Shown here piece by piece: positions 55,458 through 64,000 of a DNA stretch of 64,000 nucleotides. The stretch covers positions 12,177 through 76,176 of the forward strand of contig DF237399.1 in assembly GCA_000708835.1 (NCBI GenBank), written 5' to 3'. This stretch comes from Klebsormidium nitens. Lineage: Eukaryota; Plantae; Klebsormidiophyceae. Positions within the stretch are counted from its first letter, which is position 1, and each line of letters opens with the position of its first letter. Both the position numbers and the translations under genes were made by a program. Under the pieces are notes generated by a model that worked only from the letters and a program-made list of their open reading frames with translations, was not told the DNA's origin and ran no database searches.

Positions 55458-56913
55458 GACAGATGCCCGCGGCGTCTGTCCGTCAATCGTTGTATCATAT
55501 GCGTGGCATAATGAGAACTGTAGAAAGCATGATTAGCAATTAGCATTGTTTGTCGAGCTGTTTTGCCGATGCCAGCTAGAGTACAGATTCAATGGTTCGT
55601 AGCAGCGCATGTCAGTGATAGCAGAGCGCTGCTTGGTCGGAGCTGTCGGACAAGCGGACAAGCGCGAAGAGTTTGGCGCGCTGTGTGAGTTCGATCAGTA
55701 GAAGGTGGTCGGCGGGTCAGCGAACGTCGTCCAATGGTGTAGGGTGTCGCGGGCTCTGCTATCATATCTTAGAGATGTACAAGGCTACGTACTGATGCGG
55801 GCATGAATGTAGAACATTGATTGGAGTAAGATCGCAGAGGATTTGGAAGGGGAAGATAGGATGGTCCCTTATAGGTACCATCATTGCCGTATGCTAGACG
55901 CCTGCCAAGTCATTGTACAATGGTCTTGTGGCTATGCTGGCTCATATGATCCTGCGCTTGAAATAAGCTAGCTAGTGGGTTCGAAGCTAGCCGCTGAGCT
56001 GACATCGAGACAAAGCACCAGTTCCGCGCGCTAATAAAGACCTTTGAATTGAACATATCATTTGCGCGTCAGTCCAAGGTCGTCTTGCATACATTTTCAC
56101 CCGCTCCATCACATATATTGCAAGGTCCGACTTAGCCTATAGGATCTTGTGACATGCGTGCATTGATCGTTTATAATTAGCCATGGCATGGATTGCAATG
56201 GCATGATGATACATGGATGTAAATTATCCTATAAAGCCCATACCGAAGCATGGCACTCAAGTGAGTTACCTGGTACACGGTTGGCCACAACCAGCCTAGG
56301 CCCGGTCGAAAAGTAAAAGTTACGAGCTACCGTCGGCGGTAAAATCGAAAATTCGCCGACCGTGGGTACTTTGGCGCGCTGGGTACTTCGATACAGGCTG
56401 AATTTCGAAATCGAATGTACCGCAGACTACGGTCGTTCGATGCAGTCTAAGAATCCGGATAAAAGGACTTAGCCGAATGAAAAACGTCGCGATATTCCCC
56501 GAGCACTCGGAAGTTGTGCCCGGAAGTAGAATCAGACTCGTATTCTAAATCCAAGCATCATATGTTGCATCAGTGAGTGGCTGGATGGTTACGAGAGTAT
56601 ACAGTTAGTTGGATAAAGCATTTGACACAGAGTCGACATACATAATAATATAACAATGTAATGTCTGAAGCTACTTGAACCTAATGCATCTAAGAATCTC
56701 GCGAAGCTTCAGAGAATATATGTGCAGATTGCATTGGTGAATGAAAAGTTAAACATATGAAGGTAAAATCCAGCTTTACATGAGCTTGAATTAATTTATT
56801 ATATAAGTCGCGTCTGTACAATTGATGTGGAATAGGTAAACTATGTATCCTTAACCTAACCTATCAAACTCATCTTTGGTAAAGGTTATACCAGCGCCAG
56901 CTAGCTAATTGGC

Positions 56914-59900
56914 ATGTCAAAAACAAAGATTGATGCAACCCTAACAAAGCGCAATGTCGTCCTTGGCGCCATGGAACCGCCTCTAAGCTGGGGTAGTTTC
57001 AGGTGCCCACGTTCTCGGTTGTCTGCTCTCCTCACACCCGCGCAGAAGGAGGACATCCTGAAAAGGAAGAGACAAGAAGCTGCATTTGCGCAAGATCGTG
57101 GAGAACGTGGTAGATTTGCCGCAGTAAACAAGAAGAGCAGACCAGAACGTCCAGCTGCTGAACGTAAAGTTAGAGAAGTAGAACTTGTTCAGCAGCGCTT
57201 TGATAGTTACGTTGCAGAAACAAAAGCCAAGTTTTCAGCACTCCAAGCTGAACACTCTGAGCAACTAGATCGACTTCAGTCCAAAATCAAGAATCTGAAT
57301 TCCCAAGTGAGATCTGCAGCGATTAAATTGGGATACGCCAAGAGCAAGAAGGCGGCAAGTGTTCAAGTTGCTGGTCTAGTAGGGAGGAGGAAATTGACAG
57401 GTGGAATCAGTAAACCTACCAAGGCAAAACTAGCAAACGTGATAGAAGATCTATTCAGTGTTGTCTTTGCTAACTCTGAAACACGTAGCACAGCTCTCTA
57501 TGAGCACTACCGTAGGCATCCTGCTGATTACCATCTCATCTTAGATTCCGCTGTCGACGATCAAGCCACGTTTCAGAGAAGCTGTGTCCAACACCCTAGT
57601 TGGCTGCAACCCTATCAGAGAGAAGTCATCACAGCTATCGAGGAAGCTTGGACCCTTGATCAGTGCCTTGCTGCTCAGATCCACTGCAAAATTGGGCATT
57701 CTGAAAAATGGCAGTTCCTCATCAACCTTCTGAGCAAAATCTATAACTCCAAATCCAAAACTTGGGAACGTAGAGAAATCCTGTACAAAGGTAGCACAGT
57801 GTTCTTACCTCTTCTCAAGTCCAAAAACGCTGTGAAAGCCCATCGAGCAGCCCTCCATTCCATTATCCCTTTAATCCAAAACGAAGATGGCACCGCTTGC
57901 TGGACTAACCTCCTGCAGCTCATCGTGGAGACCGTGCAACTCGACCGGACCAGCGGGTACCTGAAAAGGAACCAGCAGCTTGTCAGAGATTCGCTCTGGC
58001 TACATTGGGGGGGCGATGCAGCGGGGTGGATTCGGGGGATGTCCCATAGCATCTGGGGCTTTAAACTCCTCGGAAACAACCGGGTGGTCACGCACTCCCC
58101 CAGCAACATGCGCGTGGCCCTAACCTTTGAGGGCAAAGACAAGTACTCCACATACTTGGAGTACCTGCAGCCGTTTCTTGAGCAGATGGACAGCCTGGCA
58201 AACGAGGGGTTGCGGTTAGACGAAACCCATTACACGGTAACCCAAACCCTGGGGGCAGACTACGTCCTGATGGCCGAGCTCCTGGGCCATTCCGGAGCCT
58301 CCTCCCTCACCGGGTGCTGCTTCTGTGAGAAGCATAGAGACAATTACGGGAAGCTGGGTGTGGTGAACGGGAAGAAAGTGCCCCTGCCAGCTAAGCCGCG
58401 CACCACAGAGAGCATGGCCGCTGCGACGCACCGGCCGTGGCGAACCGGACCAGACGTGGAGTGCCCCTACTGCCATGAGAAATTCCCCAATCAGGCAGCC
58501 GTCGACGCCTCGGTCCCCCCCACAACCAAACAGGAGATCAAAAACTTCCAGCAGTCCCACGCCGGAATGCGGTTCGGAACCCCCCCAATCTTCAAGTTCC
58601 CCCTCTCAGCCTACGCAGTCTGCATTCTCCATCTTCTCCTCCGCCTCATGGCGATCACCTTTCAGCAGACTGTGGCCATCAATCTAAACACCCCTGAGAA
58701 AACCGACGCAGCAAACGCCCTCATCAAAGCCCTTCACCTTGGGGTAAAAAAACTGGAGCAGCGGACGACGAGCGGGGAGAAGAAGAAGGACACGCAGGAG
58801 ATCAACTTCATTGGGAGGTAAGTTACTTACTTGAATGCTCGAGCGTGCACTGCTGCATCCAAGCATCCCAAGCTCTCCAAGCTGCACTTTCTGAACACCT
58901 CCGCACCCACGCTCAACAGCTCCGCCTGAACACCTCGGCTTCTTGCTTCCAACACTCCTGATGACGTCCTATATCCTAAGCTCTGTCCTGCATACAATGT
59001 GCAAGTGTCATTGGTTAGTTCAAACCAACTCCTGTTAGTGCTAACTCAAATCCACTTTGCATTCTGCTTTCAGGGAAGCGCGCGTTCTCCTGCATCCAAA
59101 GGCCTACAACGCCTTCCTGGACATTGCCATCGACGACGACACCAAGCGGGCAGAGGCGGCAGTGATCTGGGACAACCTGGCTGCGTTCTACAACGAGCTG
59201 CTGCAGCCACTGCAGAATCCGGAGAACAAAGACGAGCGGCTGGCGAAGGCGAGCGTGGTGCAGGACAAGGGCGTGGCGTTTGTGGACAGCTTCACGGCGC
59301 AAGTGGGGGCTGGCAAGGCGACACTCTACTGCCACCTGGCGGTAGATCACGTACCTGACATGGTCGCCCGCTTCCCCGTCAACTTCTCCGACATGTCACA
59401 GCAGTTCGTGGAGCACAAGCTGAAAGAGGGCAAAACGGACATGCAGTTATTCACCAACCGGCGTTTGGTGGACGAGCGGGTGAAGATGGGGCGCAATCAG
59501 CAGGTGATGGCGAAGGGGAGGGAGCGGCTGAATATCGAGAGGGAAGTCCCTCTGCCGCCCACGAGGAACGAGAGAAGGTACATGGGCAACGGAGAGAAGG
59601 CAGCTGAGCAAGCAATCGAGCGAGCTGAGCGGAGGGGCAGCTGGCAAGCCGGAGCAAAGCTCAGTTGGAGAAGAAGTTGGAGAAGTGGGGGCCGGACATC
59701 GCCCGTGTGTACACGGGGTACAAGGAGATTGTGGAGCAGCTCACCGAGGCGGAAGAGTCCACTGGGGAGGATTCTGTCAGCGCACGCTTGATGGTACTGT
59801 CCGAAAACCGGACGCCAGGAGCTGGGATCGACGGCCCCGTGGGGGAGTCGCAGGGGCCAGCACCAACGGGGGGCGCCGCCGCATCGGCGGCAGCACCAGC

Positions 59901-60084
59901 GGGCGCCGCAGCAGCGAGAGGGGGCGCGGCAGGACCGAGGGGGGGCGCGGCAGGGGCGAGGGGGCCCGCGGTCGCCGCAGCGAGGGGAGGCAGGGGTGGA
60001 GGAAGAACCCGGGGGAGAGGCAGGGGCCGAGGTGGCGAAAGAGCGATTGGCCCGAGGGTGGCGTCGTCTGCAAGACCCATTTGA
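56914..60084 (+). CDS. RAG1-core/Transib-like DDE transposase, with apparent frameshift in the C-terminal tail
   Basis: Exon 1 56914-58817, intron, exon 2 from 59074. Motifs GGD368, GAD449Y, C468xxC471, LH573, H722xxxxH727 (YCHLAVDHVPDMV) and VE748H. The frame stops at 59791 (873 aa). A frame change near the G4 run 59634-37 would extend it to 60084 (about 970 aa, RGG-rich tail). Confidence 0.8.
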
Positions 60085-60260
60085 TAGTTTAGGAGTTGAT
60101 AGTTCAGGAGTTGATTGTAAGCAATTGTAAGCAATTGAACAAGTCCAAGTGCAGAACACAGAACACTTTGCACATGCTTTGCACATGCAGCCTACTCAGA
60201 GCAAAGAAAACTTTGTTGAAGCAAATGTCACCCCCCGTGAATCCTCCAAGTGCATGTGCC

Positions 60261-61518
60261 CTACAAGCCGGTACTGAGTATGTCCGCACTCTGTCGCCTT
60301 CGGGTATTGATGCACTCTTTGGAATGTGACCCTTTAGCTAAACAATGCTCCCCCCTTTTGAAACATCGATTCCTTGTAAACCTTGCAGTTGCCTTGAAGT
60401 TGCCTGGGTCATGCACCTTTTGATTGAACTTTTTGATTGCAATGAAGCAATATTTTGCAAACCAACAGACAAGCAGACAAGCAGACAAGCAGTTCAGAGT
60501 ACAGATGATGCATACCTTCCTCAATGTTTGGCAAAGCGTGCCAACCGTCCTCAAGCCCCCTTCCTGCATGCAACTCAGCAGCTTGCAGACGCCGCCTCTC
60601 ATCTTGTGGCCTTGCCCCCGGACGCGGCAGCACAATGTGCTCGTCTCGCATGCTGCGCTCTGAACGTGCACTGATGAAAGATTCATCAGTGTCGTACTCG
60701 GCTCTCAAAATGGCCTCAGAAGCAGCCACCATTTCAGCACTGACTGCCAGCCCCACATCCAGCATGTTCACAACCTCATCTCTGATCCACTTTTCTATGA
60801 AGTCCCACCCTTGCGGAGGCTCTATCGTGCCTTCTGCCTTCGTGATCACCCCTGCCACGGTCATCTGAACCCAGCCGTAAAGGAAGTGCACCCGAGAACC
60901 TGATGCTTTGATGCTGGTGTGCGTGACTTCCATGGGCGGCACTATAACCACCACTTCACCTGTAGGCAGAATCTTAAAACAGCCATAGCCTCGCTTCTCG
61001 TTCACCAAAGAGAAACTGCAAAACTCTAAAACCCCTCTGCTTGTCTCCAGAATCCTCTGATGGGTCTCGACTGTCGCAGTTCTGACTGCCGCCTCTTCCC
61101 ATTCTGCTTCAAACACCGCTTCAAACGCAGGCAAAGGGACACAAGGCTGAGTGGTCCAAAGCACCCCCGAATGAGCTGTCGGCGTCAGACGCCAGAAAAT
61201 CTTTCTCCGCCAAAAGGAAGCAATCTCCCTGGCATCATACAAGCAAGCAAACTTGCTAGGGCCAGCCTGTGACAAATGGAAGCCTGCATACTGCTCCAGA
61301 CACTGGGGGCATTCTTTCAACCCTCCCTCTAGTCTTTCCCCATCTGCCGGACAGAACTTGAAGTCCTTGCCGTGCACTTCCAACTGCTTCTCTGCAACAT
61401 ACAGACCCATGCGTTGATCAGCAAATGCCTTTGCCTCTGCTTTGCTTTTCTTGGGCCGACGCTTGTGGTCGTCAGCCCACGAGGGCTCCTTTCGTCTGCG
61501 CCTTTCTCCGCCTGCCAT
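60261..61518 (-). CDS. Transposon-encoded accessory protein of unknown function (about 381 aa if spliced)
   Basis: Long ORF 61518-60409 with a basic NLS-like N-terminus and a CPAD...CPQC motif. A probable donor (G|gtatgc, exon end 60516) and acceptor (cag|, exon start 60403) give a phase-compatible Cys/His-containing last exon to TAG 60261. Upstream exons are possible. Confidence 0.65.
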
Positions 61519-61729
61519 GCTGTCAGAGCAGAGAATCTACCTGCAGATGAGAGCAACTTGTCAGGAACCAGATTAGAGCAATTGCCCACAAAAGAAATTG
61601 CCCACATGCAAGCACATCACCAGCATCAAAGCCGTAAAACTACGCAAACCTTTCATAGTTGTTCAGCACAGCAACCATTGCTCAACTACAAGCAAGCAAG
61701 CGCCAGCAAACAACACAAGCAAGCGGATC

Positions 61730-61810
61730 AGCCAGCACAAGTGCAACCAGCAAGCATCTGGCAAAGCATCTGGCATCTGGCATCTGGCAAAATTGGCATC
61801 TGGCAAAATG
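61730..61810. repeat. Short degenerate tandem repeat (gcatctg)n inside the transposon
   Basis: gcatctggcaaagcatctggcatctggcatctggcaaaattggcatctggc. Confidence 0.7.
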
Positions 61811-64000
61811 AGCAAGCAAGCAGAGTGACTCAAATCCAAAACAGAAGACTCCAGAAGACCAGGCAACCATGAAGACTTCGTCTAGTCAGCAGGATACTGT
61901 TGACTGGACAAGGTGACTGACGTAGCAGTATGCTCCGGAAGCATCTCTGCATGTCCTTAAAACCAATGCGCAAGTGCCAGACAAGCATGGAGCCATGTGC
62001 TACCTGACAGTGCACATGGTCTCAGCAAGGAGTGCAGCCAACAGAGAACACTCACCTTGGACAAAGCACGGAAGCCACTCCTTTGGGAGTCTGCCAAAAC
62101 CGTGCGGTCAAGACTCTAGATCTATCGTCGGAAGTGCATGGCGCCGCGCAAAAGTTGATTCGGAATTTTTCTGACGAAGCGCCACCTTGATTTGACAGCT
62201 AGAGTCAGACACCCTGCCATGCACCCCTGCCACTCTGACGCGCTGTCACACACCTCAGATCTTCAAATCAGCGGCTGAAACTCGACAGTCGACCTAAACG
62301 CATTGTCACCCATGGTCATACCAATTTTAAGCCGTTGATATGGATGTTCGCCCCATGTGCAGAGCGCCTACCGCCAAAACTTCAAATTCAAATTAGCTCC
62401 TCTGAACCTCCCTTCCACGGGCATCTTCCTCCTCCTCGAAACTCGACCTATCTTTTTTCGCGATTTTTTGTGGGTTTACCGAAACCGACGGCTACGATTC
62501 ACCGTCGCTGTCAAAATTGAAATCGTACGGCGCTGCGAGTGGCGGCCGGGTTTGCCCGTAGGCTGGTTGTGGGGTTGGGGCCGTGACTTCGATCCTTTGA
62601 TCGAACTTCGAACTTCAATCCTTTGATCGAACGCACCCAATGATGCAAGGAATGTCCCTCGAGTCCGGTTGCATGTCTCCAGCGCAGTCAGGCTTAACAT
62701 GCATTTCATCAGCATGCAGCTAGGCTCGTAAATTGGATCAGAGACTCGATCAATTTAAGAATAGTTTTTGTGTCTTCGCCAAGATCCGATCAATCGTTAG
62801 TGGTCAGGTTATCGATTGATAGTAAGGGATCGTGGCATGGTTCCTCTGGCCCGCTCCTCAAAATTGTTGACATTCATCTCGCACGTCCCGCCACATTGCA
62901 GCTAATGCCGGCCCGAGTTTCAATCAGATCTGCAAGGATAGTTGGTCAGGCTCGCGTCCAGGTTGGCTCGATGATTAGACTTGACGTTATACGGTGCAAA
63001 CTAGTTGCGGTCCAGCAATACGCGCGTGGATGCGCCTATTGAGCGGCGGGGCATTGATGCTAAGACAGTCCTAAGACTGAACTACCTAGAGTTCTTAAAG
63101 GGATGCCATGTGTGGTTAATAGTTGGTGCCGCCTCAAATAAGCACACATGCATGCACCAGAGGAGATAGGCACCTGCACTGAAATCCACATCATGGCCTC
63201 AATAACACAGACGAAGACTCGAACGACTCGACTGGCGGCCTTCGCATGAGTCCCACGCTGGATTGGTGTCTTGGCGCCGTCAACCAATGAGACCTGAACA
63301 TTGTCATAGGCCACTGCTAATCTTGCCGAACTAGCCTAAGCTCGTAAGAGGATTAATTTCTATCATGGTGTCTTGTGATATAGAAATTCAAGGTAAACAC
63401 TTTGATGCACAGGGGCTGACCCACGTTAATGGTCCGTTAGAACAATCAAAGGGACCTGCTTTCTCACAGATCCAAATTCTACCTACGGCGCGGCCTATCA
63501 AAGACCATAAATGCCTGCAGGTTCTACTACCTACGACGCTCATTGGCGGATTCCGAAGCTACGCTCACGCCTCCGCTTCTTCGTTCTCTGGAAAGGATGC
63601 ATATGACATACGTGTGACTTCTACGTTCGAAGCGCATGGGCCGGTGCGAATCACCAACTAAAACTTTCTACCTTCGCAAGGGAATCAGTTTTTCCTCGAA
63701 ACATGTTCTCTCCGCACTAGTTATTTCTCACTTCTTAAAGGTTAACTTCTCAGAAGCACACGGTGCTCGAGACCCCTTCCTTCGTGGTCGTGACGCATTC
63801 TGCAAAGCACAAAGTGACGATACTGTGAACGACTGGAAACCGGGACTTTCGACCCTCGATAACGATACCATGAGCGCATCGGATCCGACGCCTCCGATTG
63901 TCTCTTTTTGAGAGTGAAGATGCATTTCGCAGACAGACAGTCATTCAACATGTTTCTGAGGGGCCTTGAAAACCTTGAGAAGATCGATGTCACGATGTAT

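Follow-up and report, generated by a model that had tools for sequence, protein, structure and literature searches.

A transposase with a RAG1 core fold and a conserved convergent partner gene in a transposon family of Klebsormidium and related green algae

Introduction

Does a transposon that joins a RAG1-like transposase to CCAC termini and a 6-bp target-site duplication (TSD) lie outside the described families of its relatives, or do these features belong to one insertion only? The question is raised by an element in a 64,000-nucleotide stretch of the Klebsormidium nitens genome (GenBank assembly GCA_000708835.1, contig DF237399.1, positions 12,177 to 76,176, forward strand), hereafter the window. 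A first-pass annotation, made from the sequence alone, noticed there perfect 14-bp terminal inverted repeats (TIRs), GGTTGG direct repeats immediately outside them and two convergent genes between them. It suggested an undescribed lineage of the clade that unites RAG1, Transib and the CMC group (CACTA/EnSpm, Mirage, Chapaev). We find the ends, the repeats and the two genes all in place, and CCAC ends with a 6-bp TSD to be most likely an accident of the single insertion site of the window copy. The reading that we favor, with a probability of about three in four, is that of a two-gene, autonomous-type cut-and-paste transposon family of Klebsormidium and related green algae, placed within the CMCT clade (CACTA/EnSpm, Mirage, Chapaev, Transib, RAG1) and integrating with an inferred 2-bp stagger.

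The ancestry of RAG1 is usually traced via Transib and the RAGL elements of animals and a few protists. En/Spm carries subterminal repeats and depends on a second protein that the element encodes. The length of the TSD is normally fixed within a transposase family, and duplications of 6 bp are found in hAT6, IS3EU and Dada. Members of the CMCT clade have 5'-CA..TG-3' termini and TSDs of 2-5 bp (PMC12730594), and CACTA-like elements with CAC ends and a 2-bp TSD have been described (PMC6004678).

Results

A transposase with the core fold of RAG1

Pfam searches returned no match for either protein of the window element (none at E<=1 for the partner), and the described Pfam families do not capture the wider transposase family. 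An exhaustive profile search recovered 380 relatives of the transposase, the named ones from the green algae Pterosperma, Cymbomonas and Tetraselmis and the remainder metagenomic. A profile word-search for named relatives returned close Klebsormidium-type proteins alone, and no moss protein occurred among the 30 long relatives whose sources were looked up. All 32 long relatives scanned stayed below the cut-offs of Pfam, for RAG1 as for every other family. Their best sub-threshold matches were to RAG1 (E=8e-4, one protein) and to DUF1280 (E=6e-5), which argues that a profile built from these 32 members is free of true RAG1/Transib sequences. When compared with the PDB, this family profile (A3) matched RAG1 of zebrafish and mouse, and RAG1L of amphioxus, with E=3.5e-12 to 1e-9, in alignments that span RAG1 residues D600, D708-C727-C730 and H937-H942-E962. 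HzTransib was absent among the 60 PDB sequence matches listed for it. The link to RAG1 needed the wider profile; a Klebsormidium-only profile (A2, exon 1 alone) returned coiled-coil noise from the PDB.

The predicted fold leads to the same relatives. An AlphaFold (AF2) model of the paralogue P0001, with a mean predicted local distance difference test score (pLDDT) of 78 and a core above 90, gave Foldseek results in which the top 49 PDB matches were all RAG1, RAG1L or HzTransib, the next being the P element transposase at E=0.15. Alignment with VIA-align scored Z=25 to RAG1 459-1007, 22.4 to BbRAG1L and 21.5 to HzTransib, with the P element transposase at 13 and Hermes at 8; identity to RAG1, RAG1L and Transib was 10-13%. 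In the ESM Atlas the model lay nearer to RAG1-type clusters (template modeling score by hit, 0.71-0.75) than to the Transposase_21 cluster (0.54). The window protein itself carries D368, D449, C468-x2-C471, LH573, H722-x4-H727 and E748, its paired cysteines standing 19 and 22 residues past D449, which is the spacing of RAG1, and its E748 standing 21 residues past H727. All 32 relatives keep the D, D, C, C and LH positions unchanged. The enzyme thus has the RAG1 core architecture, comprising dimerization/DNA-binding, RNase H, zinc-binding and C-terminal domains, with an intact D-D-E triad and RAG1-like zinc ligands. Judged from profiles and modeled structure, it is a remote but solid homologue of RAG1 and Transib. 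The RAG1/Transib-like character first assigned to it is supported by fold, profile similarity and the D-D-E, CxxC, LH and HxxxxH motifs alike.

Between the RAG1-type CxxC and HxxxxH motifs lies a further H...CxxC...H set (H506, C517, C520 and H549 in the window protein; 486-529 in P0001), which is invariant in the 32 relatives, distinguishes the Klebsormidium enzyme from RAG1, RAG1L and Transib, and possibly forms an additional, lineage-specific zinc site.

In a public run, 58815 is linked to 59072 across GT..AG by one RNA contig, and further RNA contigs match both exons exactly; the transposase gene of the window copy, or of an identical copy, is transcribed and spliced. Relative to its paralogues the window copy lacks one base near 59636 (GGC CAG reads GGCAG), a 1-nt frameshift in the C-terminal tail, after which the reading frame stops at 59791 and the conserved Arg/Gly-rich tail runs on in another frame to 60084. 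The catalytic core lies upstream of this lesion and is intact. With its conserved tail replaced through the frameshift, the window copy may be non-autonomous. The partial K. nitens gene model at this locus is KFL_004500130.

Another RNA contig connects 57957 with 58828 across CT..AC, which on the minus strand reads GT..AG, and also covers 58828-58981 inside the transposase intron. It represents a spliced antisense transcript across transposase exon 1 (57957-58828, minus strand), possibly a product of read-through from the convergent partner gene.

A conserved partner in convergent orientation

The plus-strand transposase and the minus-strand open reading frame (ORF) of 369 aa, recognized at the outset as two convergent genes within the ends, keep this layout across loci. 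In all ten loci with enough sequence (the window, L001-L006, L128, L129/130 and L133) the partner lies tail-to-tail with the transposase, even in subfamilies whose transposases are 44-50% identical. The distant relatives L131 and L132, the latter with too little downstream DNA, had neither a partner homologue nor definable TIRs. The partner has ~330 conserved residues, a basic N-terminus and a zinc-ribbon-like motif, CPxDG...CPxC, after which comes an orphan domain; its homologues are 47-77% identical. The proportion of nonsynonymous differences (pN, 0.11-0.38) is far below that of synonymous ones (pS, 0.60-0.83, saturated), which indicates purifying selection, as found likewise for the transposase, and argues that the partner is a functional, co-inherited gene.

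No kelch or PHD signal and no Pfam match was found in the partner, and two Atlas searches gave sub-threshold zf-MYND leads alone; an AF2 model from nine sequences had a pLDDT of 35 and was unusable, so that a kelch fold is not certainly excluded. Its sequence nonetheless argues that it is not RAG2-like. Of the analogy to ProtoRAG drawn in the first-pass annotation, the tail-to-tail gene layout stands and the RAG2-like partner does not.

Ends of the element and its target sites

The TIRs are perfect over 14 bp as claimed, CCACAACCAGCCTA facing its exact reverse complement, with GGTTGG adjoining both (Table 1). A perfect 14-mer inverted pair is by itself not rare in 7 kb, since an unrelated perfect 15-mer inverted pair is also present in the same 7 kb. 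The ends exceed chance because the edges of homology coincide with them, and because many termini share their sequence: blastn homology to other Klebsormidium copies (~70%) has 56285 (L001:5047) as its exact first base and 62572 (L002:5337) as its exact last, and CACAACCAGCC is common to 16 termini from 11 loci. A scan of metagenomes with the 14-mer TIR gave more than 100 single chance matches, none usable. The CAC tip is present in 15 of the 16 termini. The base preceding it is C in 10 of the 16 and otherwise G, T or A, being G at both ends of L004, and this pattern appears to fit a target preference better than a TIR position. Hence the CCAC terminus does not hold as the family end: the outermost C/G pair varies. 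Beyond the first 13 bp the two ends are asymmetric, each with blocks kept across copies that are otherwise ~70% identical, and those at the 5' end are probably protein-binding sites.

A run X1 contig (2041 nt, depth ~31) matches the window over only 34 nt of the 5' subterminal region, at 56316-56349; its loose end resembles a sister terminus (TACAACCAGCCTAAGCCCGGTCGAAAA) and then diverges. It may belong to an element, related or non-autonomous, with a copy number of about two.

Five other complete copies could be compared with the window copy, two from K. nitens (L001, L003) and three from metagenome contigs of a Klebsormidium-like alga (L004, L128, L133), together with several single ends; copies differ by ~30% at the DNA level. 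Over the 6 bp that lie one base out from CAC, the flanks of four of these five agree at 2/6, 3/6, 2/6 and 4/6 positions, and those of L003, read by eye, at 4/6. With the termini drawn as CAC...GTG, perfect and mutually different 2-bp repeats appear in L001 (TC), L004 (CG), L128 (GC) and L133 (TT), and L003 has a 3-bp repeat, GTC/GTC. The chance that at least four of five copies would show a perfect 2-bp match is ~7e-5, or ~3e-3 after correction for the 36 combinations of boundary and length that were scanned. A 5-bp TSD with CAC termini is matched at 5/5 in no copy, the best being 3/5. The window copy, which reads GC|CAC...GTG|GG, is the exception to the 2-bp pattern.

These comparisons remove the 6-bp TSD as a family feature, as none of the five other complete copies has it (four show 2 bp and one 3 bp). 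The proposal that CCAC ends plus a 6-bp TSD match no described family had rested on one copy. The test set for it beforehand, the boundary and TSD of other copies, gave a result that speaks against it, both differing from those of the window copy, and with the failure of these two features the element agrees with the rules already known for its clade. The GGTTGG pair is most likely not a 6-bp TSD; it probably arose when the element inserted, duplicating 2 bp, into a short microrepeat of the GGTTG type, and such a pre-insertion site would explain the GGTTG-rich flanks on both sides. The window junctions can be read as a 2-bp TSD with one substitution, or as a GG duplication with an extra C at the 5' junction, and L003 likewise as carrying an extra base at its 3' junction.

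The hexamer GGTTGG/CCAACC stands at the same offset (-7 to -2 from CAC) outside 3 of the 16 termini, among them those of the window copy and the 3' end of L001 (12257-12262). GGTTG complements the CAACC core of the TIR, and insertion may favor TIR-like targets. A little beyond the right end of the window copy, at 62586-62632, a 21-nt sequence (ACTTCGATCCTTTGATCGAAC) occurs in two direct copies 26 nt apart, the other being 95% identical.

Table 1. Features of the window copy (positions in the 64,000-nucleotide window)
Feature	Position	Strand	Remarks
Transposon body	56286..62571	+	6286 bp, CAC...GTG termini; the earlier limits 56285-62572 add one C/G pair
5' TIR	56285..56298	+	14 bp as first drawn (CCACAACCAGCCTA); 56286-56298 are the 13 bp common to copies
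3' TIR	62559..62572	-	Exact reverse complement of 5' TIR
Left GGTTGG	56279..56284	.	2-bp reading: 56284-56285 (GC), or 56283-56284 (GG) plus extra C at 56285
Right GGTTGG	62573..62578	.	2-bp reading: flank dinucleotide is 62572-62573 (GG)
5' subterminal conserved blocks	56330..56388	+	CCGTCGG ~45 nt from end; GGGTACTT twice, at 56364 and 56381; alignment of six 5' ends
3' subterminal conserved blocks	62486..62536	-	GC..CCGTNCGAT at 36-50 nt and ATC..CCGTC at 74-86 nt from end; invariant columns of nine aligned 3' ends
Transposase exon 1	56914..58817	+	D368 (58015-58017), D449 (58258-58260), C468 and C471 (58315-58326), H506, C517, C520, H549, LH573
Transposase intron, GT-AG	58818..59073	+	From sequence and RNA contig junction; position common to homologues ending at INFIGR
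Transposase exon 2	59074..60084	+	H722 and H727 (59333-59350), E748 (59411-59413)
Partner gene	60409..61518	-	369-aa ORF; conserved part 60517-61458

Discussion

Several observations weigh against a 2-bp duplication as the rule of this family. The window copy itself has no clean 2-bp TSD (GC vs GG), its repeat being perfect at 6/6 one base farther out, where the chance of such a match is ~1 in 4096 per geometry; the repeat in L003 has a length of 3 bp instead of 2; and the flanks of the other copies match at 15/30 in the 6-bp geometry, somewhat above the 7.5 expected by chance. The complete copies number six in all, three of them from the metagenome contigs. No empty site was found when both flanks and their flank-to-flank join were compared by BLAST with the window and the recovered loci (except L131-L133), which returned self matches alone. 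One might suppose true CCAC...GTGG termini with a 6-bp TSD, the other copies being old and their duplications decayed, a supposition helped by the position of the perfect GGTTGG pair right outside a perfect 14-bp TIR, by C being the commonest base before CAC and by the 15/30 flank matches. We consider this improbable. TIR positions 1-11 are much better conserved than the base preceding CAC, which is G at both L004 ends; L001 retains 16/18 of its TIR yet 2/6 of the supposed TSD; and the four perfect, mutually different dinucleotides that abut CAC...GTG are impossible if a fixed C/G pair belongs to the element. A 6-bp duplication in one copy beside shorter ones in its sisters would also depart from the constancy of TSD length usual within a transposase family. 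The 6-bp families hAT6, IS3EU and Dada were dropped from consideration, the fold and motifs being RAG1-type and the 6-bp TSD not a family feature.

That the element could be a true member of Transib or of RAGL/ProtoRAG, a RAG1L-RAG2L type transposon in a plant-lineage genome, is suggested by the Z score of 25 to the RAG1 core, the RAG1-like spacing of catalytic and zinc residues, the tail-to-tail pair of genes and the bipartite conserved blocks at the ends. It is nevertheless very unlikely. Identity is low, at 10-13%; no Pfam RAG1-family match reached threshold in 33 proteins; HzTransib is missing from the sequence matches listed; the TSD is not 5 bp; the conserved partner is devoid of kelch or PHD signal; and a survey of RAGL and Transib elements across eukaryotes is without Klebsormidium, Cymbomonas and Pterosperma (PMC9435367). 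Hardly credible, finally, is that the gene pair is a domesticated or immobile relic with vestigial inverted ends. The frameshift of the window copy and the ~30% DNA divergence among copies would suit a relic. Against this, unrelated loci hold several diverged copies, every one of which has its two ends and its two genes; purifying selection acts on both genes across paralogous copies; the terminal and subterminal blocks are conserved; and a near-identical terminus is present on another genome contig (loose end at 56316). The reading of a mobile two-gene family with CAC...GTG ends and, mostly, 2-bp TSDs is therefore retained.

Placed beside known systems, the family resembles RAG1, RAG1L and Transib in its core fold (approximately RAG1 459-1007), D-D-E triad, CxxC 19 and 22 residues past the second D, HxxxxH ~20 residues before E, and CAC tip, and it resembles ProtoRAG in having a convergent second gene between the TIRs. 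Unlike them it has low sequence identity, no Pfam RAG1-family membership, a partner with neither kelch nor PHD signal, and green-algal hosts. Its TSD is 2 bp (3 bp in one copy), whereas that of Transib is 5 bp. The tip is CACAACC, not a CACAGTG-type heptamer, though its first five bases are those of CACAATG, another form of the heptamer of Transib, which resembles that of the recombination signal sequence (RSS); conserved second blocks are present at ~36-50 and 74-86 nt, with a sequence and spacing different from those of Transib. With the CMC group it shares D-D-E with C(2)C, [M/L]H and H(3-4)H motifs, CAC...GTG termini and a short TSD. From CACTA/EnSpm proper it differs in that neither the window proteins nor the 32 relatives match Transposase_21 or another CACTA Pfam family, and in that the partner is unrelated to any named protein.

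A possible parallel in the plant lineage, by published classification, is Lanisha, a cut-and-paste family of the moss Ceratodon purpureus with EnSpm/RAG1-type motifs that has been placed in the CMCT clade (PMC12730594, PMC8245031). No publication describing the Klebsormidium two-gene family was found in the literature searched. Lanisha itself was reportedly described in Repbase Reports in 2020, under GenBank MT647524. Of the proposed "undescribed lineage" of the RAG/Transib/CMC clade, then, an unnamed lineage below all Pfam cut-offs survives, and the distinctness claimed from CCAC ends and a 6-bp TSD is gone; the family is best viewed as an unnamed green-algal lineage of a known clade.

Homology suggests how the element may move. 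The transposase would bind the terminal and subterminal blocks and pair the ends, nick at the CAC boundary and free the element, probably via a hairpin on the flanking DNA as in RAG1/Transib, and integration would follow with a 2-bp stagger. The partner may serve as an accessory subunit, its N-terminal zinc-ribbon-like motif perhaps contacting DNA, in a role like that of TnpA in En/Spm or RAG2 in ProtoRAG, without relation to either.

A RAG1-core-fold, expressed transposase in a streptophyte alga and in prasinophytes, paired with a conserved partner other than RAG2, widens the sample of uses to which this architecture has been put. The alga, haploid and with several copies of the element, is moreover a tractable setting for asking whether accessory subunits are a general need of RAG1-fold transposases. 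A bolder proposal, to be regarded as possible rather than likely, is that the Klebsormidium-type elements split off deep within the RAG1/Transib/CMC radiation as a green-algal branch of their own, which independently gained an obligate, structurally novel partner. If this were true, two-component RAG-like recombinases would have arisen more than once, and the partner would define a new accessory-protein fold for DDE transposases.

Additional observations

Some of the other loci have features of their own. Upstream of the sister copy on K. nitens scaffold DF237217 (L001 1-4342) lie a gene with a weak match to KDZ (Kyakuja/Dileera/Zisupton) transposases and a D5_N primase-like gene, an arrangement suggestive of clustered mobile or viral DNA. 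In the other K. nitens sister copy, the stretch from the 5' end to the start of the transposase gene holds what looks like a small nested insertion (L003 2921-3194), a pair of inverted repeats that are perfect over 26 nt and stand 222 nt apart. On the metagenome contig L131 (4952-10847), two distant transposase relatives stand head-to-head and share a 103-nt inverted stretch of 77% identity. In the public run X5, all differences from window 56100-62099 are C>T or G>A and strand-consistent within each contig; the run evidently represents bisulfite-converted DNA, not a second strain, and could serve to read cytosine methylation over the transposon.

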